A DNA stretch of 64,000 nt. It comes from Paragordius varius (Eukaryota; Animalia; Nematomorpha). Position 1 is the stretch's first letter. Every line of letters starts with the position of its first letter. Of this stretch, positions 4,763-60,289 are shown piece by piece. The DNA lies in the NCBI GenBank assembly GCA_964247055.1, contig OZ176052.1:806001-870000 (forward strand), read 5' to 3'. The notes under the pieces were generated by a model, which made no database searches, had not been told where the DNA came from, and was given only the letters and a program-made list of their open reading frames with translations. A program made the position numbers and the translations under genes.

Positions 4763-7064
4763 ATGCTTGTGAATTCTGGTGCTACTTTAGGCTCAAACGC
4801 TTTCGCCTATTCCCAACAATATCAGGTAGGTTTTAATTTTTTTAATATTCTAATTTGGTTTTCACAAAATTTAATAAATTTTTCCCGAAATTTATTTGAA
4901 AAAATTTTTATTAATTAAATAAATATATTTTTAAATCCAATTTATTTAGCATCATAACAATGTTTTACCGCAATTGTTTAAAAACACAATGAACCATCAG
5001 CCCAATATCCAAAGTACTGAAAAATCCACTCTAAATTCAATTCTTCAATATGGTGCTGCTTCTGAGTTTCAAAATTCTTTTCACAATACTGATGAGGATA
5101 ATTCAAGTTCATCTTCTTCAGTAACTTCATTTGAGTTACAACCAAACAACTTTAATAATGGCAACAAAGTTAATTTAATGGGGGATATTAGAATGTTAAA
5201 TGAAAACTTTGCCAAAATGTTTTCGGCAAATCTTGAAACTTACAAGCAACATTTAATGAATTCACCGCGAATTAATTACCGTAATAAAGTTTGTTGTACG
5301 CAAGATAATTCTACCACCACTAATAATAAGCCCAAAAACGATAAAGTTACAGATGATTGTTCTTTAAATTTTATTAACCAAAATAATAATGGTATATTAG
5401 TTAATCGTCCCAACAATTTATCCATTAAAGTACAACATCAACAACAGCAAACTAATAATAATTGCCAAACTTTTGAGCAACTTGGTAGCAGTAATGCTAA
5501 TAATGTTGTTTGCAACAATGTTTCTCCATTCTCCTATGACATGATTGGATCACCTTTTGGGGGCAGTGCGTCATTTTCATCATCTTCGTGTGGGAGCGGA
5601 CGAACAGGGGACCGTTCAACTGGTTCCAATTCCTCTCTATCTTTGGAAAATAACCAACAAAGTTGTTTGATGACTCTTGTGAATAATGCTCAATCTATGC
5701 GTCATCAAACTCAACCCGTAATCAGTGGTGGAATGAGCCGTTATAAAACTGAACTTTGCCGACCCTTTGAAGAAAGTGGAGAATGTAAGTATGGTGACAA
5801 ATGTCAATTTGCTCATGGTATGGGGGAGATGCGGAGTTTATCCCGACACCCAAAGTATAAGACTGATTATTGCCGTACGTATCACAGCATTGGGTTTTGT
5901 CCATATGGGGCTCGTTGTCATTTCATACATAATGGGGATGAAGCGACCATGATAAATCCTAACGTCGCCGCAAACAATATTCTGATAAATAATGGTAAAG
6001 CGAATGGACCTTTGGGTGGCAGCCACATGAATAATAAAATGAGATTTGTTGTACCAGGTAACAATGTGAGTAGTACCAATAATAATAATCGTTTACTTGG
6101 CTCTCGTCCATCTCTTCCTATAATTAACAACACGAATAATATGTTGCATAATCCTTTATCTATAATGACTCCTAATAATGGTGCTTTCAACAATAATAAT
6201 ATTAACAATAATGCTTTAAATCGACACGCCTCGTTACCTGTTGCTCTGAAATCCGAGGATATTGAATTTCTTCGCAACACTCTTTTGAGCGCATTGAATA
6301 CTAATTTATCACCTAATAATAATAACACAGAAGCTGATTTTAATAATTCTTCAATGTCTGTTACTAGTCATTTGGCTCAATATCAAACACCTAAAACGAA
6401 TAATTTACTTGCATACAAGCCTGGTGCATCGAAAAAAGAATTTGTCAATTTGGATTGCAATACGGATTCGGGGTTTGAGGATAACTTTAGCGCTATTTTC
6501 ACTTGCTCTAACAACAACACTCTACAACCAAAGCTATCAAATTTAAGCATCGGCAATGACACACCTAATACCAATAATAAAGCTGTTTTAAATTTGCTCA
6601 ATAATTCTCTTCGTGTTGGCGCTGATACTGATCGTCATGATACGGTAATTACTAACTTTGACTCTGCTAAAAATTTAATCAAATCAAAACCAATGAGTCA
6701 CACTCTTTTCTGTGATATTAACCCAAATCATGGTAAACAGCAACAACCAACTAAATTTGCTGACAAATATATGGATGATAAACCAAAAGGTGTTTTTGCT
6801 GATAGTTGTGACGATACAACCGTGTCAACTAAACCTCAATTGTCATCATCATCCAACTTATTATCTTCTGGTAGCAGCTTTAATAATAACAACAAGTGTG
6901 AAGAACAATTGTCGTTATTATCAAACCCACATCATAGCAATAATTTGTCAGACGAAAGCCACATTCTGCCAAACAAAATAATCCAGCAGACGATTGAACA
7001 AACCTCTACAACCGCTCTAAGGCTCCCTATTTTCAAAAGTTTTACACGTAGCGATAAGTCATAA
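4763..7064 (+). CDS. Tis11: Tis11/ZFP36 (tristetraprolin-family) tandem CCCH zinc-finger mRNA-decay factor, about 725 aa
   Basis: join(4763..4825,4950..7064). Exon 1 ([21 protein letters not shown]) is joined in phase 0 across a 124-nt GT-AG intron to the long ORF. Tandem fingers [27 protein letters not shown] and [27 protein letters not shown]-terminal RLPIF CNOT1-binding motif. The short-first-exon, long-second-exon layout matches the family. Confidence 0.95.
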
Positions 7065-8241
7065 AATACATATTTTATCATAGATTTTTACATTCACAAT
7101 CACTACATTACAAATTTAGTATAATTATTTTACCTTTTTGATTATTTTAATTTAACCTTGTGTGTATATCAAAAAAATGTAAACCTGTGTTGGTTTTGAA
7201 TTAGTGCCATTTGAATTGTGTTTCAAACTAACTGTGTTTCATATATTATTCATTGTACATACCATAATATCGAATATATAGGGGTTGGGGAAGTGTTCAT
7301 ATAAAATGGTGTTATCTGCCAATAATTACTATTGAACACTCTTCAATCCTATAATTCGCAAATATGTGATCTTTGTATCAAAATAGTATATTTATTTATG
7401 TAGTATAAGTAATACCAAATGTCATAATAGATGATCTAATTATTAATTATTTTTACATGTACATAACATATATATTTATAATTTAAAATTTCAATCAACT
7501 TTTACGAAGGCAATCATAATACACCATAAACCCATAATTTTTTTAAAGAGCTCACTCACACTCACCAAAATGTTTTAAAATAAGAAAACAACCGAACTTC
7601 CATTTTAGTGCAAATTTTTTTGGGAACAAACACTGATTGATATAATCGGGAGATCCTTTTTTACCTCTTAGTGGATGTGTACGTTCGCTTTTTCAATAAA
7701 GTTTTGTATGCATATTACCTTAATATTATTAATTTATTTCTCAATAGCTAATTGAATTGAAAAATATTTATTAAATTTCTACTCTACAGTTTTACCCATA
7801 TATAAATGTATGTATATATATATATATCCCATCTCTATGCACAATCAATATATATTTTTTACATACTTTATCATATGTTAATATATTTTTTATCCATAAT
7901 CTATTACCTACCATATTTTAACAAATTTTTTTCATTTTTTGGATAACTTTTGATCTTAAACTGTATGAGGGGAAAAAATTCCTGGAAATTTCTTATTCTA
8001 ACAAAACAATTACGTTTTTTATGTTAATGGTTATAACTGTTTGAACATAAAAAGCACCCTTAAATATCCTCCGTTTATCTCTCCTATTTTTTCATTTTTA
8101 GAAACTATCACTACACACTCATATTTTTGCCCGCTACCCCTAATTTATTTATTAACAACTAATTCTATTTAATAATTAATTAAATATATATATATTATCC
8201 AATTTTACAAATTTACCACCATATTTATATTTATTTTAAAA

Positions 8242-16300: not shown

Positions 16301-19300
16301 ATGATTTTTTGCCAGAAATTATAAAAATAAGGTAAGTTCACCAAAAAAACGATAGAATAATTTTTACATTGTTCAATAACTAATACAGTTAAACATTTTA
16401 AAGCAAAACTCAAAAAGAAAATTAAAGAATGCAGAGGGAAAACAATCCTACATATTCTTTCTTTCAGTATACAGTATGAGTAAGTACAAATTGCTAAAAA
16501 GTTATTAATTATTGCCAAATAGGATTTATATACAACAAAGGGGAGTATTATTGGCTCATAGTTATTTTTTCAATTTTTACTATTATTATTAGAATAATTC
16601 TCTTTGCTGCATATGCTATTTGTCAATAATTAATAATTTTCAAGCAAAATATCCTTCTCATTTAGTATAAATTCAATTTTACTTAACAAAAAAGGTCACT
16701 TGTAATAGTCAAAAATTTATTCTTTGAATAAATTTAATTATTGCTGAATTACTATTCCAATATTAATTTTCCTTAGAGAATAATAAATTTATACTCTGCA
16801 TCCAAATTTTTCAAATGAAAAAAACTAACTAACCTCAACTTTAACATTTTCCAATTTTTCAGCATGCTTGTTAATAATGTGTTTGCGAACAAAATCGGGC
16901 CCCTTAAACTTTTTACCACTCAAGGGGCATAACCATTTATCCTTGGATAGTTCTTGTATGTTATCCTTAATAAATTTTTCAACTTCAGTATCATAGTCTC
17001 TGAGACCTAAGACGCGTGCATCCTCCAACGTGATTTGTGCATTATGAAGTGAAATGAAATTGGCTATTTTCTTTTCAAAACTTTTCATCCAATCATAAAC
17101 TGTAAGATAATATGTTAATGAAATAAATAACCAGTTGCAAAGTTATCATACCATTTGGACTTAAAGTTAGTCCTAGAACATTTTAAGTTTGTCCTTAAAC
17201 CTTTCAAGTTGTTCCTTGAATTTTTTAAGAATGTCCGTAAACACTTAAAATTGGTCTTTAAACATTTCAAGTTGGTCCTTGAATTTTTAAATATTTTTAT
17301 AGATATTTTATCGATTTATAGCCCATAATTTTTATTTGCCACATATTATTACTTCTTTTGGTTATCATGTTTTTATTTCTATGCAACATGAACCTATTTA
17401 TTGTAAAAATCTATCTAATAGACACATTCAAAACAACCATCATTCATTAAATACTTTTCATAAAAATATATATTAATTATTAATGTGTAGTATATAAGGA
17501 TTTCTTAATTCTGACAATGCAATGTATATATCCACACCTCTTTTGACAATATATCACAAACATAATGATTCCCCCTTTTGAAGAATGCCATTCTCTATCG
17601 GGTAACTATTAATAATGTGATATCAGAAAGTTTGTTCTGTGGAACTATACAATGAAAACAAAAACTCATAATAAAATTATTAATAAGATTTAAAAGGTTA
17701 TGGTGTCAAAGTCAATTTCTCAAAAACCAAATTAATGTACGATAATCCCACCGCTAAATACCCATGCAGCGTATGTAGAAAAGAAGTTAAATCAAATTCT
17801 GTACGCTGCAATTCTTGTCTTCTATGGGTACACAAAAAATGTAGTAGCCTTAAATCTATAAATGATTACGATAAACACTATAAATGCTGGACATGTTTAA
17901 ATTATAATATTAGTTTAACAACCAACCCGATTCCCAACCCTTTCAATATGGAAACAGTTAGCAGTTTTTGCTACTTAGGCGATATGATATCAGCCGGTGG
18001 AGGAATAGAACATGCAATTAAGCATCGCATATCACAAATGTGGAAAAAATACCATTCGTTAAAATCAATAATAAATACGTCAAACTACAAACTAAATGTG
18101 CCATTTACACTACAGCCATCCGTCCCGTTCTCACATATGCATCCGAATCCTGGCCGATGTCAAAAACAAATGAATCCAAACTCATAAACGCTGAATCCAA
18201 ATTATTGAAAACAATATTATTTGCACACAATCCCTCTAACAATTATACCGAATCCATAAACCCGTACCATATACTCAATCTCAACCCCGTCAACAACGTC
18301 ATCCGAAATCTCCGGTTACAATGGGTTGGCTGGGCATGTTGAGAGACGGCAAGATACTCACATTCTTAAAACTATGAAAAATTACTCGGTTGAACTACCA
18401 GCGAAATCCGGTCGACCCCATACCACATGGCTCAACACAATAACTAAAGACCTCGAATCGCTCAATTTAAATCTAGAATTAGCCAAATCAAGAAAAGAGT
18501 GGAAAAAACGGGTGTACCGTCATTTAATGGCGAATCCCCATACAAATGAATGATGATGATGAATGATGAAGATTATAAACAAAAAGAATACGCCAATTAG
18601 TTTAACAAAAAATAGTGTTTGTTCTTCGATAAATCAGGTGTTTTAATGACCAAACCTCAGACAAAACTAAAAATCCAAGCTAGAGCGTGATAGTAAAATT
18701 GCCACAGCGCGTTAAAGAAAAAATGTTACTTACTCTATGATAGGAGGCCCTAAGATGTGCTGGTGGAATATTGATTTGTAAAATCCGTAATATAATGAAA
18801 ATCGAAAATAAAATAGAAAATTAATTATAAACAAAAATTATAAACGATGTGTGAAACCCTTTCACCGTCAATAGTAATCGCAGACTAGTTTCGTGCTTGT
18901 TAGCACTAATCAGTAAGACACAACTATTTGACTTGACTTGGGGTTTTCACACAATCCGTCATTTACCATTAAAATAATGTATACGCCCACACATATAAAG
19001 TCTGAAAGAAATGTTAATACAAATATATTTTTGCAATTTCTTTGTTTTTTCATAGAATCTATGTGTACACTTTCACATTAATATAATTGTCATCAACTAA
19101 TATTGCCTCAAGTATTCATATAAAACTACATTTTCACCTTATAGCTTTAAGTTAACCTCTATAAAGTATGCATTCTTTAAAAATGAATCATTATGTATGT
19201 GACATGTTATGAAAGGAGGTGTGGATATACATAACACTGTCAGAAGAATTAATTTTAAATTCTTAAAGAAAAATCTTATAAATACAGCGACCGGAAATCC

Positions 19301-34019: not shown

Positions 34020-37000
34020 AATAAACTAAAGCGCTATTTAAAATCTATATACTTTATATCAGTGGGTAATAAATAATTTTTTCTAAAACTTCACATAAAA
34101 AAGGTAGGCAAGCATTTACTTGATGAAGTCGAGTCCGAACTCGAACTGGAAGAATGGAAAGACGAGCACGAGGAACTCCTGGATGAGCCATGCTAAAAAT
34201 ATTTTATTAATAAAAGTTTTTTTTGAAAGATATGTTTAAAATAACTTAAATAAAAATGATTACCAAATTTTACAATTACAGTTTATTAAATTACTAAAAA
34301 CGTAAAACTAAATAACTTATTTTTTAGAGAAAGATATGTTTAAAATAACTTAAAAAAAATGATTATTACCAAATTTTACAATTAGAGTTTATTAAATTAC
34401 TAAAAAAAGTAAAACTTAATGACCACCGACTTATTTTTGAAAAAAAAACCTTAATATTCCTTCCTATAAAAACTTTATAATCAGGAAAAAAAATGTTTGG
34501 AAATATACTATTAAGGGAGAATACCCAATTTAAACGATACAAAACAATGAGTTAGTTATATTATATTAAAAATTAGAAATATGGTGAATTTTTTTATAAA
34601 ATTTTTTTTTTAATTTTTTACGTTTTGTCTTCTTTAAATTTTCTTCAATATTTATACTACTTAAAAATATAATTTTAATTATCTCGTAGAATTTATTAAA
34701 TTGAATTATATTCAAATTTTCGATACATTGTAGTATTTTTTCAATTTTTACTGTTTAAAATTTATATTTTTACCTAGCTTACTTGTAAACTAATAAAAAA
34801 AATTATTTCAATTCAAATGTTGAAAAATATTAAAATTATAATATTTTATTAAACCAATTAAAAATATTATATAGATAGATAGATAGGTAGATATTAATAA
34901 AATAAAATACCCGTTTAGCTGGTGGTTTTTCTCTGAAACATACAAAAAACATAATATATATATATCATTTACAATTCAAATTCATCTTTAAACAATTCAA
35001 ATTCACCCTCGAACAAATCAAATTCACCCTTAAACGATTCATATTCACCCCCGAACAATTCAAATCCTCCTTAAAAAATTCAAATAATCCTTGAACAATT
35101 CAAATTTACCCTTGATCAATTTTAAATAAATCTTGAACAATTCAAATTCGCCCTAAAAATAAAGTATGTGTTTTCAAGCTAATATAACTCATTATTATCA
35201 ATATGCAATATATTTTTATGGCTAAAAAAATTCAGTATAAAGGTAATTTTAATCTTCTTAGAAAACACATAATTTATTCACAGTAATTTGTATTGTTCAA
35301 GAGTGAAATTTAAGTGTAAATGATATTGAATAATTATTTCTAAACTTTGCCAATCAGTTTAAAAAAGTATATACAAATTTAATTTAATTAACATTCAGTA
35401 AAAAACATATTTTTTAGGTACTTAACACAAAATATATAAACTTATTTTTTTAAAAAAACCAAACAGCCAATTAAAAATATTTATAAAAATAATCATAATT
35501 TATTGTAAAAACACCGACAGTTAGAGAACTTAACTTAAAATTAATCAACAAAATTATAAAAATACTCAAAATTAAAAGTTAAAAATACCATATTTAAACT
35601 TATTCATTAAACTCTGAGTTAAACAAAATCTCTTTAAATAAAAACATTGGAAAAAAAACACTTTTTAGAAGTATTTAAATATTAAAATCTAACAAATCTA
35701 TCAATTTTACAAATTTAATCAACCAATTATTATTGCAATATTCAAACAAAACTTAAAAAAGCAAACTTTTCTTTATTATCATGCATTTCATGTTCTTCAA
35801 TCTCAAAATCAAGTTTTTCCTCATCATCTGGCCCATTGTTATTATTATTGTTAGCAAGTGAAGAGTCTGGCATGTCGCCATTTTGTTGTCCGCCGCTGGT
35901 TGCCATGGTGATTCCTGCCTCCGAAGTCACATGACCGCTAAAACTGTCCTCTAAATCGCCAATATCTTCCATATCATCATTATCAAGTATATCAGGTCGG
36001 ATGCCATTTTCGTCGTTTTTGGCCTCCATTTTTTCGTCTGCAATACCACCATTGTTGTTTTCATCATTGATTGAGGTATTTGGCTTTTTTTCTGTAAGGT
36101 TTAAAAAAAAGTTAGTTATATAAAGATTAAAAAATTACGTGTGCCAATATTATCAAATAATATTAGAGATTATTGCACTTAGAGTAAAAAATAAAAGTAT
36201 ATTGATAATTCATACATCATGAAAAGGACAAATCTGATTGGTAAAAAAATTTGATACATTCAAAAAAGGAGTAAAATCACAACCCTACTCGTAATATTTA
36301 TTCTTTTACTCCATTGTAAAATAAATAAGAGTTTAAGATAAATATATAGATAAAAAGGCATATAAGTATCAATTCAAAGTTTCATTTGACTGTTAAAACC
36401 CCTGAATGTTTCCCCTTATCGATAAAAACTATTTTCAATGTCTTAGTTACAAAAAAAGAAAATAAATTTTCAATTTACCTTTACTTTTACGCGTCGATAC
36501 CGCCTTTTTCTCATTGTTGGCCTCTTTTTGGTTTGTTCCGGTTGCCATGGCGACGCCTTCAGAACTCAGCTGATTTCCACCACCCAATGAAGATACACCA
36601 TATGATTCTGAATCTAAGGCTTTTACATCGGCATCCGTACCACCTTCCAGTCTAACAATCACTAAAGAATAAAGCAAAAGTTTATGATCAATTTACAGAA
36701 AAATAAAATATTTTTTAAAAGGCCATTTTAGTTAATTTAACAAAAAAGCGACTAATTAATGTTGTATAAACTTACCAGAATCCATAAATTTGACAATGTC
36801 AGGTATGTGGTATTGATTAAGGATAATCTTATCAACCAAGCCAGACTCATAAAAATCCATGAAAATGGCAAGTCTAAGCTTAACTTTATCCTCTTTTTCT
36901 TGTTTAAATTTTTCCCTCTCATCCGGATGATACTTATTTTTAAACCTAAAAATTGGTATAGAATGAGAAAAATATAATAATTTCAATACATGGTGCCTAA

Positions 37001-39530
37001 AAAGTTAAATAATGTATAAATAATACCTGAAAAGTTACACATTTTTTTGGTATATTGACAACTTTGAAGTCATCACACATTACACAAAATGAACACAAAT
37101 CATATATATATATACAATCAAAAAAAAGTGGTACAATAATAATTAAAATACCAAAAAATGTTAAAAATAAGAAGTATATTATATATCCATTTCTTCGCCG
37201 CGAAAAAAAAACATTATTAAATAAACTTTTCATAAACCCGTCCCCAATAAAAAAGGGAAAAGGGTAGATTTAAGTACACTTACATATTTTCTTAAACAAA
37301 AATAATAAATTGAATGAATATGCATTTATGAACATATATAAACAACATCAGTTTTTATACAATAAATCGTAGATTTCGTAGCTCACAAAATAACTTTTTT
37401 TTATAAAATTAAAATGAGTAAAATAAATTTTTAACATAAACAAATCTATTAGAGTTTCCACTCGGACTTGTAGCAACCTAAAGCAAAATATGTAATTTAT
37501 ATATGTATAATTATATGCATTAATTTTAATATATAAAACACATTGTTATCAAATTTGGTGTACGTGATTATACTTATTAAAATTTATGCGACAGAGGCAG
37601 ACGATATTTTTTATAACAAGAAATCTTTCCAATTTATTGTGGTTAACTTGTTAATTAAATTTATTTTTTGCCTCTAAAAAAACATATGACGCGTATCAAC
37701 CTGGTGAATTTCTCTTATAAAACTTTGAAGTGTTACGGCCTGAGTTTGAAATGTTTAAGGACAAAAGGCGTTTAACAGAATTTAAGTAATACCTATAACC
37801 CCCAATACAATACAGCAAAATTAAAAACTAATCAATATCCAAAACTACTAAATGTAATGAAAACTCACCATTCTTCACCCTTGTGGGCATTAAAGAAGAG
37901 TGAAATAGCATGGCGTTGAAATTCCAAAGTATAATTTTTGTAGCGACGTACAGCTTCTTCGGGTTCGATAGTGTCCTCTTGTTCAAGAAGGTATTGCTTA
38001 AAGCTCATCAAATGATTATCATCATGGCTGTACCCAGATCTAAACAAAATTTTTTTATAATTTTAATTAAACCATTTCTTTTTAAAAGAAAGAGAAGACG
38101 CCTTCATCTTTTCCTATGTGGTTGTTTGTGTTGGTAAAATTAATAATTGGAATATCGGCAGCAATGTTTATTTTGCTCCCAAAACCTTTGGTTATCCTTT
38201 TGAACATCTTTTTATTTTACGTAAATACTTTATTTAAAGCTAAACTATATTTACAAATCACATGAATAGTATGAATAAAAATACATTCGCCATATAGTAA
38301 CAGCATTTTTTATGGCTAATATCGCCGGTAAAAACAAAAAATGACTATAAACTAATAATTTTTCTCATTGTATGCTAGCTTGTGACAATATTTAATGTTA
38401 ACTAGCAATGCATTTAACACTAGTACCTTAGTATTTACGATTGTCATCATATAGAGTGAGTTGTATAGAAAAAAATTAGAATCAAAAATTATGGTTATAT
38501 ATATGTCTTTATTTTTGCGTTTAATCTTTACACATTAAGAGAAATTTTGTTAGGCAATTCGGTTTTTAATGGGCTAAAAAGGAATTTGATTAACATGTTT
38601 TTTGCCATGTTTGATAATTTTTATTTTTAATCAAACTATCATTGCGAACAAAGTCCACTGTATTTTCTCTCCAGGTAAAAAATGAAAAATCATACACGGA
38701 AATAGACAAGTATATTAAATCCTCTTTTAGTTAATTAAAATAGTGAAATATCCAATAATATGACTCGTTTAAATGATTTTCTTTATATAAAAATATTCAT
38801 GTGTTTAATAAACTTCAAACCTATAAGACATGGCCCCTGGGGGTAAGGGGTGACCCGCTAAGTGCCCTGGGGGTGGGTACTCTGCACCTAGGGGAGGTAG
38901 TGGACCCCAATATGCACCAGGAGGGCCATAATATGCGCCCCCGCCAACAGCTGCTGATGATTCATCCCAATCAGTGCCTGGTCGACGGCCCTTTTTATTA
39001 TTATTGTTATAATGTGTGGGAGGTGAATATTCTTCATATCGTCTGCGTTTAGTGGCACCTCCTGCTTCGAAGTCTCCACCGGAAGCAGAAATATTTCGAT
39101 AATTTTCTCCACGAGTCTTATTATTGTTGTTGTAAGCATTATTGGGATTCGAACGTACGTTCCGGTTGTATTGTTCATTTCTGCTGGTAATAAGAAGCAA
39201 ATGTAAGGAATGTATAAGGCTTTAAGAATATATATATGCGGTTTATATAATAAAAAGAGTTAGATGGTATAAAACCCATAAAAGCCATGATTAAAACATA
39301 TTGGTGGTAAAACAAATTTTTCACTCAAACCCAGTCAAAAGTTATTCATTTCCATAAAACTATATAAAAAAGTTTTGTAAGATAAAACTAGTTATGTAAA
39401 AATATGTTTAAACAAAAATACAAACTTACCTATCCTCCCAATCCTCTTTGGTTCTAACATCATTTCGCTCTCTTCGAAACTTATCGCGTCTGCGCTTGTC
39501 ATATTCTTCATCGGATTCGGGAGCAGCCAT
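13393..39530 (-). CDS. SRRT: Serrate RNA effector / Ars2, 21 exons, about 1131 aa
   Basis: Exons in minus-strand order: 39430-39530, 38821-39183, 37869-38039, 36776-36945, 36479-36661, 35767-36091, 34911-34932, 34120-34192, 33463-33507, 32925-33010, 30781-30921, 29979-30159, 29449-29663, 28338-28545, 26929-27036, 24174-24316, 21176-21329, 16834-17099, 14822-15077, 14357-14465, 13393-13468. All GT-AG, phases consistent, total 3396 nt. Ars2 motifs: [116 protein letters not shown]-stop. Exons 7-9 and 13-16 are supported mainly by phase and composition. Confidence 0.93.
13553..13735. mobile_element. MITE family B (~185 bp, long inverted ends), representative copy in SRRT intron 20
   Basis: TA-flanked CAGTATGAGTAAGTA..TTGCTAGAAAGTTATT.ATTATTGCCAAATAG ... 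CTATTTGGCAATAATTAATAACT.TCTAGCAAT.TACTTACTCATAC.G. Other copies at about 16472-16666, 27134-27735 (several partial copies), 33596-33768 and 40930-41068. Confidence 0.8.
15240..15437. mobile_element. Possible hAT (Charlie/Buster-like) end remnant
   Basis: GTTTGACACCCTTG at about 15425-15438 resembles the reverse complement of a CAGGGGTGTCAAAC-type terminus. GGCTTCGCGGG.CGCATT at 15243 recurs at about 60997. No partner end was found. Confidence 0.3.
17490..18572 (+). mobile_element. 5'-truncated, frameshifted RTE-clade LINE in SRRT intron 17 (antisense to host)
   Basis: [12 protein letters not shown] (late RT motif), PHD-like [42 protein letters not shown] and RLQW.GH motifs spread over three frames (ORFs 17735, 18040, 18326). 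Ends in a (TGA)n-type tail at 18546-18572, as expected for RTE elements. Confidence 0.88.
18845..18953 (-). ncRNA. Minimal type I hammerhead-ribozyme-like motif (G8-to-U variant) inside an extended hairpin
   Basis: Minus strand: CUGAUUA (18913-18907), stem II GUGCU/AACA/AGCAC, GAAA (18892-18889), palindromic ACUAGU as stem III, GUC cleavage triplet (C17 = 18883). Enclosed by helices GUCAAAUAGU/ACUAUUGAC and GUGUGAAAACCC/GGGUUUCACAC. Core position 8 is U rather than G, and stem I next to the core is weak. Confidence 0.55.
19095..19265 (-). mobile_element. Heavily decayed RTE reverse-transcriptase fragment
   Basis: The reverse complement (CTGACAGTGTTATGTATATCCACACCTCC...CATAATGATTC...AAGAATGCATACT.TAT.G.GGTTAACT) aligns by eye to 17500-17610 of the neighbouring LINE fragment. 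Confidence 0.55.
20330..21205 (-). repeat. Tandem array (5 intronic units of ~140-175 bp) that includes the 3' end of SRRT exon 17 and its donor
   Basis: GGTTACTTTCTCGATTAAGGACTCTATTTTGAGTTA, with small variants, starts at about 20401, 20548, 20689, 20852 and 20995, and at the true exon boundary 21170-21205. Confidence 0.9.
21590..21845 (-). mobile_element. Short degenerate RTE LINE 3' fragment nested in a family C element
   Basis: [13 protein letters not shown] (about 21835-21800) and [14 protein letters not shown] (ORF 21597-21803) match the C-terminus of the 876-aa RTE ORF in this window. Confidence 0.8.
22770..24110. repeat. Tandem array derived from the right arm of MITE family A (SRRT intron 16)
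   Basis: Repeated AAAAAGTATATGGTTGTCTTTT.AAAACCAAATATTTGTCTTTATATTTTTACGTTTTGTCC.TCC.TATAATTTCAATTTT units of about 110-130 bp that follow the complete MITE at 22500-22771 and decay toward exon 16. Confidence 0.85.
24330..25645. repeat. AT-rich tandem array (~120-bp units) abutting the acceptor side of SRRT exon 16
   Basis: Recurrent ATATCTTAAATTTAAAAGTAAAAAATTGAAAAATATAAT...GTATTTTTTTGTGTTTTAAAATT units, about 10 copies. Confidence 0.85.
28563..28970. mobile_element. Foldback-like MITE family C with subterminal 21-bp tandem repeats, representative copy
   Basis: Ends TATACCATTTACA ... TAAATGGTATA, with arms built of TTCAAATTCACCCTTGAACAA units around a conserved core (AAATTATGTGTTTT...AATATAACTCAT...GGCATAGTTTATT). 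Other full or partial copies near 17150, 19510, 20080, 21400-22030, 26400-26880, 30190-30450, 33130-33410, 34965-35325, 40500-40745, 42560-43022, 45625, 46310, 49935, 50825-51085, 51705 and 61905-62210. Confidence 0.82.
30930..32200. repeat. AT-rich tandem array (~150-bp units) abutting the acceptor side of SRRT exon 11
   Basis: Repeated TTTAATTTATCAAAA.TTTAGTTAGGAATT.AGAGTTTAAAATATAAAAA.GAAAATTTAAAGAATA.ACAACATTAAATAG.TGTTTAAA units. The distal units carry MITE-A arm sequence (TTATACGGATGGACAAAACGTAAAAA). Confidence 0.85.
33968..34016. repeat. (TA)n microsatellite
   Basis: About 24 uninterrupted TA units in SRRT intron 8. Confidence 0.95.
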
Positions 39531-39593
39531 TGTTGATTTGAAAAACAAAACAGATAAAAAAATGTTTTTTGTCTGAATGAATGAATAAACGAT

Positions 39594-40123
39594 ATGGTAT
39601 GTCTTCGTTTTTAATTTTTATAGATTAGATTTATTTTGATTCAAAATCGGGCTGGGAAAACGCGTTTAGCCAAATGGTTCATGAATTTTGAAGATGATGA
39701 AAAACAAAAGTTGATTGAAGAGGTGCACGCTTTAGTTACAGTGCGAGATGCCAAACATACAAATTTTGTTGAAGTTTTTAAACATTTTATATGAAGTTTC
39801 GAAACTTTAAGATAGTTTATAGACGTTACGCCGGCCTTTATTTTTGCATTTGTGTCGATATAACGGATAATAGTTTGTATTACTTGGAAGCCATTCATAA
39901 TTTTGTTGAAGTCCTTAACGAATACTTTCACAATGTGTGTGAATTGGATTTGGTGTTTAATTTTTACAAGGTAAGTACCTTTTTTTGATATTTTAACAAA
40001 TTTATTTATCAATACTTTTAGGTTTATACCGTGGTTGATGAAATGTTTATGGCAGGAGAAATTCGTGAAACAAGTCAAACAAAAGTCCTAAAACAGCTTC
40101 TTATGTTAAATGGATTGGAATAA
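39594..40123 (+). CDS. AP2S1: AP-2 complex subunit sigma, 142 aa
   Basis: join(39594..39596,39624..39773,39797..39970,40022..40123) gives [68 protein letters not shown]...[38 protein letters not shown], nearly identical to recalled animal AP2S1 and the same length. Introns are 27, 23 and 51 nt, all GT-AG, all phase 0. Confidence 0.96.
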
Positions 40124-41916
40124 TATAAAAATATTTTATAATTATTTATAACTGCACACATAAATTTTATTTTTGCTATTTACTAATAAATTTTTTATAT
40201 AATGATTTAAAAAATTGTGTACTTTATGCGTTGTTTAATTAATGCACAATGGTTTTATATTAAATATTTTATTTAAATAAAATTTACTGTTTTAAATTTT
40301 CAACTTTTTTCTCATATATTACTTTATTAAAAATATAAATCAAAACTATTTGACCATAAAACAATGGAACCGGAACTAAAACCATGTTTTTAGACAAAAA
40401 ATAATTTACGTGACGGGTTTTTTTCCTGTAATTACCTAATTTATACTTTCCAAGTGATACAAACATAATTACATCCAAAATTATTTTAGCAAAAATTTTA
40501 CTATTTATTAAAATTCACCATCCGACTATTAAAATTTACCCTCAAATATATTATATGTTTTTTAGGATTAAAATTACTTATATATTTTAATTTGTTTTAA
40601 AATTTAAAAATACTGAAAAAATAATAAACTATGCCATAAAGATATCTCATATTAATAATGAGTTATATTAGTTCAAAAACACATAATTTATTTTTAGGGT
40701 GAATTTGAATTGTTCAAGGGTGAATATGAACTGCAAATGGTATATATAGCCGTTTTTCTTTGTTGAAAAAAAATAGTCTATGACTAAAATTTGATTAGAG
40801 TATGGTAAAGTAAGCTATAGGCTTGGAAATTTCCAGGTTTAAGTTTAAATCCTAAAATTTTTAGATACATCTACATGGGCTGATGTAAATGGATAAGCGT
40901 TTTACACTGGAAAACCATATTAAAGGTCATAAATTATTGCCAAATAGCATAAAGGGTAGTATTATTGGTTTTTTCACTTTAAACTATTATTAGTAATAAT
41001 TTTCTTTGCTGCATATGCTATTTGGCAATAATTAATAACTTTCTAGCAATATATACTTAATCATACTGTATTACTTACATAGTATCATAAAATTTATTTA
41101 CATTTAATAAAGTGAAATTGGTTAATTTTATCACTTTTTATTTGTTATATGGTTAAAAGGCAATAATTTGATTGTGGTTAATTTATTCCAAGTTGCAGCG
41201 TAAAAATTATCATATAAATATGAATGGTTACGGCGCCCTAAATATCCGTTGATATTTTTGGTAAAAAACCTATGGACTACCTAATATTTTTTAGTAGCGT
41301 GAGGAAATTTTACACAGTATTGAAACAAATAAACATAAAACTAAAGACTAATATAATTATAAAAAACAATTTTAACCACATTATAATATAACGATTTGAA
41401 TGTATGTTACAGTATAAAAGAAATTATACTGACAAATCGTAAAAATATAAAGACAAATACTTTTTTTTAAAAAAGAGCCATACCTTTTTAAACCTTAATT
41501 TTTTCCATATAAGCTATTTAATTACTATTGCTATATATAGAATTGATTGTTTTGCCAATATACATATCAATATTGTAAATTGCAATTTTAAACAATGGTT
41601 ATATTTTAAAAAGTATGGTTTTCTTTTAAAAAAATATTTGTCTTTATATTTTTACATTTTGTCCGAATAATTCCAATTTTTACGGTAGAAACACACTGAA
41701 ATATCATTTTTTACAATCTAATTCATTTTAGTTAAAGAGAAAAAAGGATCAAATATTAAAAAATTATTTTCTTTTCAAAAAATGTATTTTCATTTAGTTT
41801 TTATGTTTTGTCCTTATAATTTTAATTTTTACTGATTATCGCTATTATACCATTTACACTTAAAATTCATCATCGAACAATTAAAATTCATCCAAAATAT
41901 ATTATGTGAAGATTCA

Positions 41917-58187: not shown

Positions 58188-58350
58188 GCACTTACCTGGC
58201 GCGAGGGCGAGGCTCGATCAAGAAGGAGCTCCCCTTAGTTTGAGACTTGGCCATTGCACCTCGGTCAAGTTGAAGGCTACGATTGCCCCAAATAGGGGCA
58301 AGCCGAGCGCATAATTTCTGGTTGCTAGACTCTGCGTACGCGCAGAGTCT
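58188..58350 (+). ncRNA. U1: U1 spliceosomal snRNA
   Basis: 5' ACTTACCTGG donor-pairing arm (58190), stem-loop I with loop GATCAAGAAG (U1-70K site), stem-loop II ATTGCAC (U1A site), Sm site AATTTCTG, terminal hairpin GACTCTGCG/CGCAGAGTC; about 163 nt. Confidence 0.96.
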
Positions 58351-60289
58351 TTATATTACGAAAAAATAAATTAGTTTTTTAATTTATGGCTCTGATTTTC
58401 AAGTCTAGTTTAAAAGTTCTGATTAAAATACCGTTAGTAATAGGGTTAGGCTATGAAAAATCGTAAATAATAACCCAGAACTCATATATTTTTTAATTTC
58501 GTGTTAAAATCTTATAAATAAAATTTTAAAGAATTAATAAGATATCCGGTTTCTGAATGATTTAAAGTTTATGTTAAATATAGAAAATAGGTTAAAAATA
58601 ATAAAACAGATGAATGTTACATGATTTGATTGATAAATGTTAAAAAGGACGAACTTGAAGTGTTCAAGGGCAATTTTGATGTGCAAATGGTATTATAATT
58701 ATAATTGTGACCAAGTTAGTTTATATAAATAAACGACTTAAACCTTAAATTTAAAATTATCCTGATTTTGTCAATAAAGTAAAGTAATTAATATTAATGG
58801 TATATTTGACTTTTTATATGATGAGACATTGTTAACATTTGTAATTTAGTTTCTTATATAAATTTAAAATAGGCATTTGTCGATTTATTATGTAATTTAA
58901 ATTTTTACTATACTACTCTGTGTAAAAAGCTGATCAATAATTGTTAAGCGTGTGAATGACAACAATATAAATATAAAAGTAATTTAAATATAATCTCAAA
59001 TATATTCATTTATTTATTTACAAGATATTCCTTCCTTAACCCAAAGTAATAACACCTCTTTTTAAGGTCGTTTTACGGGCGAAATATTTTGTTCATAAAA
59101 GTCTTTTGCACAAAGCTATGCAATAAAATTTAGGGAAATGCCTTGTATAAAGACTACGTTACCACAATTTTCCTCGGATTGTCTGGAAAAGTGAATCTAA
59201 AAAACAAAAAGGTTAACAAAATTTTGTGCATTTAAAACTGGCGTTTTAGTTTGATGCAGCATAATAGCTTTTAATTCAATCATCTCACACATGATAATTA
59301 ATGTGGAATTTTTGTCGACATAAATTTTATTCCATTGTAAAAATTTCAAAAAAATTTGCTTGATGAAAATAAAAATATATAAAATCTGTAAAAAACCTTG
59401 TATTATCTATGTCCATATATAACGTAAAAATACAGAGTTTTCTTATTCAAAAACAATATGCTAAAAAAATTAAATAAGCAAAAAATTTGAAGACTGTTAA
59501 AAAAACCATTTTTTATTAATACCGATTAATATAATAATTAAATTTTTCCGCCACAAAAAACAGTTGCAGTTTCGTTGATTGTTTGTTTAAACCAAAAATA
59601 AAACAACAGTAAAACTTGAAATTACACGGACAAAACGCAAAAATATAAAGACAAATATTTCTTCTAAAAAACAACCCTATTTTTTCAAACCTTTAATGAT
59701 ATTAATGAATTTATTAACAATTTACATATCTAATCTCTCCAAAACAATAAGAAATATTGGAATAAATTAATTTCAAAAAATATGATTGTCTTTTAGAAAA
59801 AAATATTGCCTTGTCCGTATAATTTCAATTTTTACTGTAATATATGCCCCTTTAAAATTCAAAAAAAATTTGTTGCAAATGTATTGCTATTTCCAACGTT
59901 TTTTTATAATTAACCATTTCAAACTTAGGTTCACTAAACGAATGCTACACAAATTTCGAATAAAAAATCATAAATAAAATTACAATATTAGTTAAAATAT
60001 AAATATAAGTTTATAGCGCCCTAATATAAAAATGTGTTAATAAACATTAAACATATTTTTGAATCAAGCCAGATATTTTGGGGGAAAAACATGTATTAAA
60101 TTGTTTTTATTACCAAAGAAGTTTCATAATGTAAGGTTAATTAACATCTAAATTAAAATATAAAAAAAATAGGTAAAAAAAGTTTCCAAGAAAAACATAT
60201 ATTTCGTAAAGCAATCTTATCTTTTATCCACAAAAAATCGGTTTCATTGATTAAATTTTTACGGTAATAACTTAGAATATATCGAAATT

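Follow-up and report, generated by a model that had tools for sequence, protein, structure and literature searches.

Results

The AP2S1 locus and its neighbours

The window, by which we mean the whole stretch of 64,000 nucleotides analysed here (Paragordius varius, contig OZ176052.1, positions 806,001 to 870,000), is very rich in AT, its GC content per 2 kb being 15-35%. On its forward strand lies AP2S1, a gene of four exons and three introns whose exons, translated one by one, total 142 amino acids including Met1. As read from the sequence, the coding part of exon 1 consists of the start codon ATG only (39594-39596, +). Intron 1 (39597-39623, +; 27 nt, phase 0, GTATGT...TATAG) contains in-frame stops, and its removal puts Met1 directly before I2. 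Exon 2 (39624-39773, +) translates cleanly as 50 codons, I2-E50, ending in TNFVE. It is followed by intron 2 (39774-39796, +; 23 nt, phase 0, GTTTTT...TGAAG), which would shift the frame and bring in a stop if kept. Exon 3 (39797-39970, +; 58 codons, F51-K108) is unsplit at FVE/VLN, and intron 3 (39971-40021, +; 51 nt, phase 0, GTAAGT...TTTAG) again has in-frame stops. Exon 4 (40022-40123, +) supplies 33 codons (40022-40120) and a TAA stop, and a candidate polyadenylation signal, AATAAA, can be read 62 nt past the stop (40185-40190, +).

The Pfam profile Clat_adaptor_s (PF01217) matches exons 2, 3 and 4 singly, with E-values of 7e-16, 7e-25 and 1e-7, and the profile coordinates of the three exons (2-51, 52-109 and 110-140) are contiguous to the residue, with no gap. 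Read from the ATG without splicing, the frame meets stops within the 27-nt segment and just inside the 23-nt segment. Since the exons occupy contiguous profile positions and the unspliced frame is closed, exactly these bases need to be removed. The original prediction had described the 27-nt and 23-nt segments and held that their removal is required for the 142-aa protein; its coordinates, lengths and quoted letters are correct to the base, and the requirement is borne out by exons that are clean singly, by the contiguous profile and by the stops met on read-through. The end coordinate that it gave, 40021, is the last base of the third intron, which is of ordinary small size (51 nt). At this base composition, GT...AG ends are expected in about 0.2% of random inserts, yet they bound all three AP2S1 inserts, and every one of these inserts falls between two codons where other animals have an intron. 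The likelihood that the ends and sites of these segments arose by chance is negligible.

Upstream, AP2S1 stands head-to-head with SRRT/ARS2, which begins at 39433-39532 on the reverse strand. Only 61 nt separate the start codons of the two genes, which means that either the 5' UTRs of SRRT and AP2S1 are tiny or their transcripts overlap. Pfam ARS2 and SERRATE_Ars2_N match SRRT exons at 16828-17088, 36759-36986 and 37868-38047, and the gene, which has long introns, is more than 22 kb in length. Farther away, a 696-codon open frame (4974-7064, +) encodes a tristetraprolin-like protein with tandem CCCH zinc fingers and long Asn/Ser-rich arms of low complexity.

Identity and copy number

In word searches with exons 2 and 3, the annotated hits bear the name 'AP-2 complex subunit sigma' and are 92-97% identical to the hairworm exons; exon 2 compared with AP-2 sigma fragments from other animals gives 92-96% identity. 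Judged by its full-length family match, the locus is that of the sigma subunit of the AP-2 complex. The same searches were also used to look for same-species matches to exon 2 or exon 3; among targets of 0.55-1.75 times the query length, a range that leaves the full 142-aa protein outside, the best reached 96-97% and none was 100% identical.

A six-frame PF01217 scan of the whole 110.6-Mb assembly found an AP2-type sigma only at this locus, the other matches being two AP1S-like genes, one AP3S-like gene and one weak match. As the sole AP2-type sigma locus in the genome, this copy must be functional. One could nevertheless suppose that the copy is dead or goes unspliced, with the segments staying in the transcript, and the fact that no RNA was seen would fit such a state. 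This is extremely unlikely, however, because the exons are 92-97% identical to the AP-2 sigma of distant animals without a single stop or frameshift, and because there is no second AP2-type locus in the assembly.

Age of the intron positions

The AP2S1 exon borders were compared with 115 exon-2-bearing fragments from other organisms, most of which are ORF-type gene calls on genomic contigs that read into introns. After E50, the next residue in 105 of the 115 is V, as a GTN donor would give, and what follows it is unrelated; only 5 proceed from E50 into FRNFK. At the other border, Q (as from a CAG acceptor) directly precedes I2 in 67 of the 115, and Met is joined directly to I2 in 35. The organisms whose fragments break at I2/E50 include the ostrich, the tree sparrow, the Chinese hamster, the beetle Molorchus and the nematode Romanomermis; a 50-aa 'partial' protein of the ostrich corresponds exactly to AP2S1 exon 2. 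As homology breaks at I2 and E50 in fragments from more than 100 other organisms, both are old intron sites.

Two animal contigs from ENA metagenome assemblies (L035 and L036, 38% GC) have introns at ATG/GT (75 and 78 nt) and at E50/F51 (1896 and 2199 nt), together with a further intron at FVE/V that is absent from the hairworm gene. The ATG/GT layout is also seen in the read-through ORFs P0020 and P0023, and in many other contigs exon 3 is bounded by Q...V and is unsplit. Another ENA contig (P0121, 574 bp) has no intron at E50/F51, and its homology begins abruptly before VVTVRD, which suggests an intron at another site in that gene.

Taken at the level of sequence comparison, these observations support the reading of introns 1 and 2 as spliceosomal introns at ancient, shared positions. 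The original prediction had placed them at ancestral positions that match those of the human gene. Vertebrates, insects and a nematode have introns at the same positions, and the match to human is made by way of birds and rodents. It had also stated that the human-type intron at FVE/VLN is absent, and this agrees with the unsplit exon 3 and with the presence of that intron in L035 and L036; the FVE/VLN intron has been lost in the hairworm.

A genome-wide class of 21-33-nt introns

Whether AP2S1 stands alone was addressed by scanning the assembly with PF01217 and PF00071 (Ras) and resolving the junctions in the loci fetched. The predicted length of each intron was the genomic gap plus the profile overlap, with the 23-nt intron of AP2S1 as the control. 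At every junction between adjacent exons that was resolved to the base, a GT-AG segment of exactly the predicted length was found. The survey gave a recurrent class of 31 introns of 21-33 nt, all of them GT-AG, in 13 genes on seven contigs. No introns fell between 34 and 50 nt, 8 measured 51-86 nt and 15 measured 131-3214 nt.

In addition to AP2S1 (27 and 23 nt), the tiny introns occur in an AP1S-like gene (L005; 27 and 29 nt), an AP3S-like gene (L009; 31, 23 and 29 nt), RhoA (L015; 23 and 24 nt) and a series of Rab/Ras-type genes (L016-L020, L022, L023, L029 and L030), where the lengths, gene by gene, are 21, 21, 22, 22 and 22 nt; 27, 29, 28 and 23 nt; 25 and 24 nt; 26 nt; 23, 26 and 31 nt; 23, 24 and 28 nt; 25 nt; 21 and 24 nt; and 33 nt. 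In genes of mixed composition, the tiny introns come first, as in L023 (23, 24, 28, 67 and 1392 nt) and in AP2S1 itself (27, 23 and 51 nt). Among 32 adjacent-exon junctions from the CCT and proteasome families, none is below 67 nt, a count to which tiny introns inside single matches do not contribute. The presence of tiny introns in adaptor and Ras genes and the lack of any below 67 nt at the CCT and proteasome junctions indicate that the class is gene-dependent.

Altogether, tiny introns account for 31 of the 84 sampled junctions, the remaining introns reach 3.3 kb, and the median intron is not below 30 nt. The dicyemid-like pattern invoked in the original prediction, in which nearly all introns are tiny, is therefore not that of the hairworm, whose genome mixes tiny introns with kilobase-sized ones.

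The survey bears on two other ways in which such segments could arise. The first is that they are assembly or sequencing insertions. We found nothing in favour of this, and errors would not, in 13 unrelated genes spread over seven contigs, produce AT-rich GT-AG inserts of 21-33 nt that coincide exactly with conserved intron sites; the idea is next to impossible to sustain. The second is that the segments are cut from somatic DNA, as in the eliminated sequences of ciliates or in programmed DNA elimination, and not from RNA. DNA elimination does occur in some worms, and DNA excision would restore the AP2S1 frame just as splicing would, although no support for it was found in this analysis. All 31 segments are bounded by GT...AG and not by TA...TA, they sit at the intron sites of other animals, and the same genes contain ordinary introns with identical ends, all of which makes DNA excision very unlikely. 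Removal from RNA is the reading that we carry forward.

A few of the tiny introns are open to translation. The second tiny intron of RhoA (L015 809-832, -, contig C5) is 24 nt long, in frame and stop-free, and if retained it would add 8 residues within a conserved stretch; four other tiny introns with lengths divisible by three (in L016, L017, L018 and L030) likewise lack stops. A word search for a same-species transcript with the stop-free RhoA reading across its 24-nt intron (L015:539-982) gave no match above 88% identity.

Splice signals and spliceosomal RNAs

Signal statistics were drawn from 29 tiny introns. The donor is G/GT followed at +3 by A in 21 and by T in 8, and G at +5 is present in only 7. 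The acceptor is TAG in 23 and AAG in 6, and CAG never occurs. T makes up 51% of the interior and occupies position -3 in 23 of the introns and position -5 in 22, and GC content is 19% compared with 33% in the flanking exons. A branch-like YTNAY motif lies 6-14 nt from the 3' end in 17 of the 29, which is no enrichment over shuffled sequences (13.8 +/- 2.7). The splice-site motifs are thus reduced to GT(A/T)...TAG. By our own reading, the donor of AP2S1 intron 2 (GAA/GTTTTT) matches the U1-complementary consensus at 3 of 9 positions, that of intron 1 at 6 and that of intron 3 at 8.

The spliceosomal RNAs are those of a conventional system. U1 snRNA has the canonical 5' end, ACUUACCUG, and U2 snRNA has the canonical GUAGUA branch-site box. 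A full-length U1 gene (118.7 bits) with a canonical 5' end and an Sm site lies in the window itself (58188-58352, +). Most other U1 copies are clustered on contig C6 at 0.56-0.63 Mb and 3.72-3.73 Mb, and many of them are degenerate. U2 matches number 46, scoring from 178 down to 38 bits, at 257000-530000 on contig C3 and 11950000-11988000 on contig C2, and a dense field of diverged U2 copies is found on the contig of the window, about 300-550 kb upstream of it.

The poor pairing of AP2S1 intron 2 with U1 and the lack of an outstanding branch motif could be taken to mean that the segments leave the RNA by a route other than the major spliceosome, for example through an endonuclease and a ligase or through the U12 system. 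However, U12-type signals (an ATATCC-type donor or a TCCTTAAC-type branch box) are absent from the AP2S1 introns and from the tiny introns surveyed, and the ends are uniformly GT-AG. Moreover, the tiny class continues into ordinary introns that have identical ends, the U1 and U2 snRNAs are canonical, and PMC13644364 judges the ultra-short introns of myxozoans to be compatible with U2-dependent splicing. A route of this kind is exceedingly improbable, and U2-type splicing is the reading that we retain.

Discussion

On balance, the tiny segments of AP2S1 are very probably shrunken ancestral introns that undergo ordinary U2-type splicing by the major spliceosome. Introns 1 and 2, inherited from early animals, are now down to 27 and 23 nt, respectively. 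They are members of a discrete, genome-wide class of 21-33 nt with minimal signals, and they would be excised from the RNA. How such introns are recognized is a matter of conjecture. Because the U1 pairing of AP2S1 intron 2 is so weak, we surmise that the two ends may be read together across the intron, perhaps with the help of its length and AT-richness.

Introns of this size have few counterparts among animals. Hadjez et al. (2026; PMC13644364, Sept 2026) state that introns under about 30 bp were once thought absent from animals, and that in 51 genomes introns below 30 bp were reported only in myxobolid myxozoans and Dicyema. The main text of that paper makes no mention of Nematomorpha, and introns are not discussed in the published hairworm genome papers that we examined.

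The myxobolids (Henneguya salminicola, Thelohanellus kitauei and Myxobolus), as described in PMC13644364, resemble the hairworm in several respects. Their introns are GT-AG, measure about 20-30 nt, occupy conserved positions and are grouped within the same genes; their motifs are reduced (GTa...AG), and their U2 is canonical. A clear polypyrimidine tract or branch consensus is lacking in the myxobolid introns. Their introns are mostly tiny, with a median of 22-27 bp, whereas in the hairworm about a third are tiny and the rest extend up to 3.3 kb. The strongly kept T at -3 of the hairworm introns is a further difference, and the hairworm, unlike the myxobolids, is a bilaterian with a mitochondrial code in which AGR is Ser. 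Dicyema japonicum, as summarised in PMC13644364, is like the hairworm a parasitic bilaterian with introns of similar size at conserved positions. Its genome is reduced and nearly all of its introns are tiny, in contrast to the 110.6-Mb hairworm assembly with its transposons and kilobase-sized introns.

Outside these animals, the ciliates Paramecium and Nyctotherus have introns in the same size range (about 25 nt; PMC5014332), which are handled by a conventional spliceosome, and those of Stentor are given as 15-16 nt in a citation within PMC13644364. However, ciliates are protists with tiny introns only, without the two-class distribution of the hairworm. The 'ultra-short' introns of humans are comparable in being a short minority class in a long-intron genome, although PMC4463651 defines that class as below 66 nt, a limit roughly twice the size of the hairworm tiny introns.

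A broader reading adds horsehair worms, as a third and independent lineage, to the animals with introns under 30 nt, and holds that they differ from dicyemids and myxobolids in using two splicing regimes at once. One regime would serve the discrete 21-33-nt class, which is enriched in particular genes and near their 5' ends and has almost no donor complementarity to U1, and the other would serve ordinary introns of up to several kilobases. We regard this reading as evenly poised between right and wrong. If it is true, intron recognition based on length is implied, and gene finders with a minimum intron length will have mis-annotated hairworm genomes, so that the reported loss of universal genes in hairworms is possibly inflated. 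If a third such lineage exists within Ecdysozoa, its mixture of tiny and kilobase-sized introns within single genes would make it well suited to studies of what sets the lower limit of intron size, and it would help to explain how the spliceosome brings together two splice sites only 23 nt from each other.

There is also a practical side. Software for read alignment or gene prediction that does not allow introns this short will fragment or overlook genes of the AP2S1 kind. BUSCO scores of hairworm assemblies are low (71.6% in Gordionus), and some of the shortfall may be artefactual.

Mitochondrial genome and other features of the assembly

The code assignment used above comes from the mitochondrial contig (15,693 bp), whose COX1 uses TGA as a sense codon at six places. 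Its AGR codons sit at positions which, judged by well-known COI motifs, we take to be conserved Ser. The sense TGA and the AGR codons at conserved Ser together indicate the invertebrate mitochondrial code and exclude a cnidarian (myxozoan) source for the assembly.

The same contig contains 77 inverted pairs with arms of up to 208 nt, 100% identity and no spacer. Perfect mitochondrial inverted repeats reach an exceptional scale in Nematomorpha (PMC6649704), and a contig so crowded with palindromes is typical of the phylum. Just upstream of COX1, at 6752-7451, lies a tandem array with units of about 72 nt, each of which is a palindrome of 49-52 nt; this array is probably the control region. A COX1-like fragment with six stops on a nuclear contig (C1:10612280-10612597) probably derives from mitochondrial DNA copied into the nucleus.

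Published hairworm genomes measure 200-300 Mb, and the present assembly measures 110.6 Mb. Within it, 18S rRNA is represented by at least 12 copies with near-identical scores, which are spaced irregularly at 9-46 kb along contig C2 (1811658-1995730).
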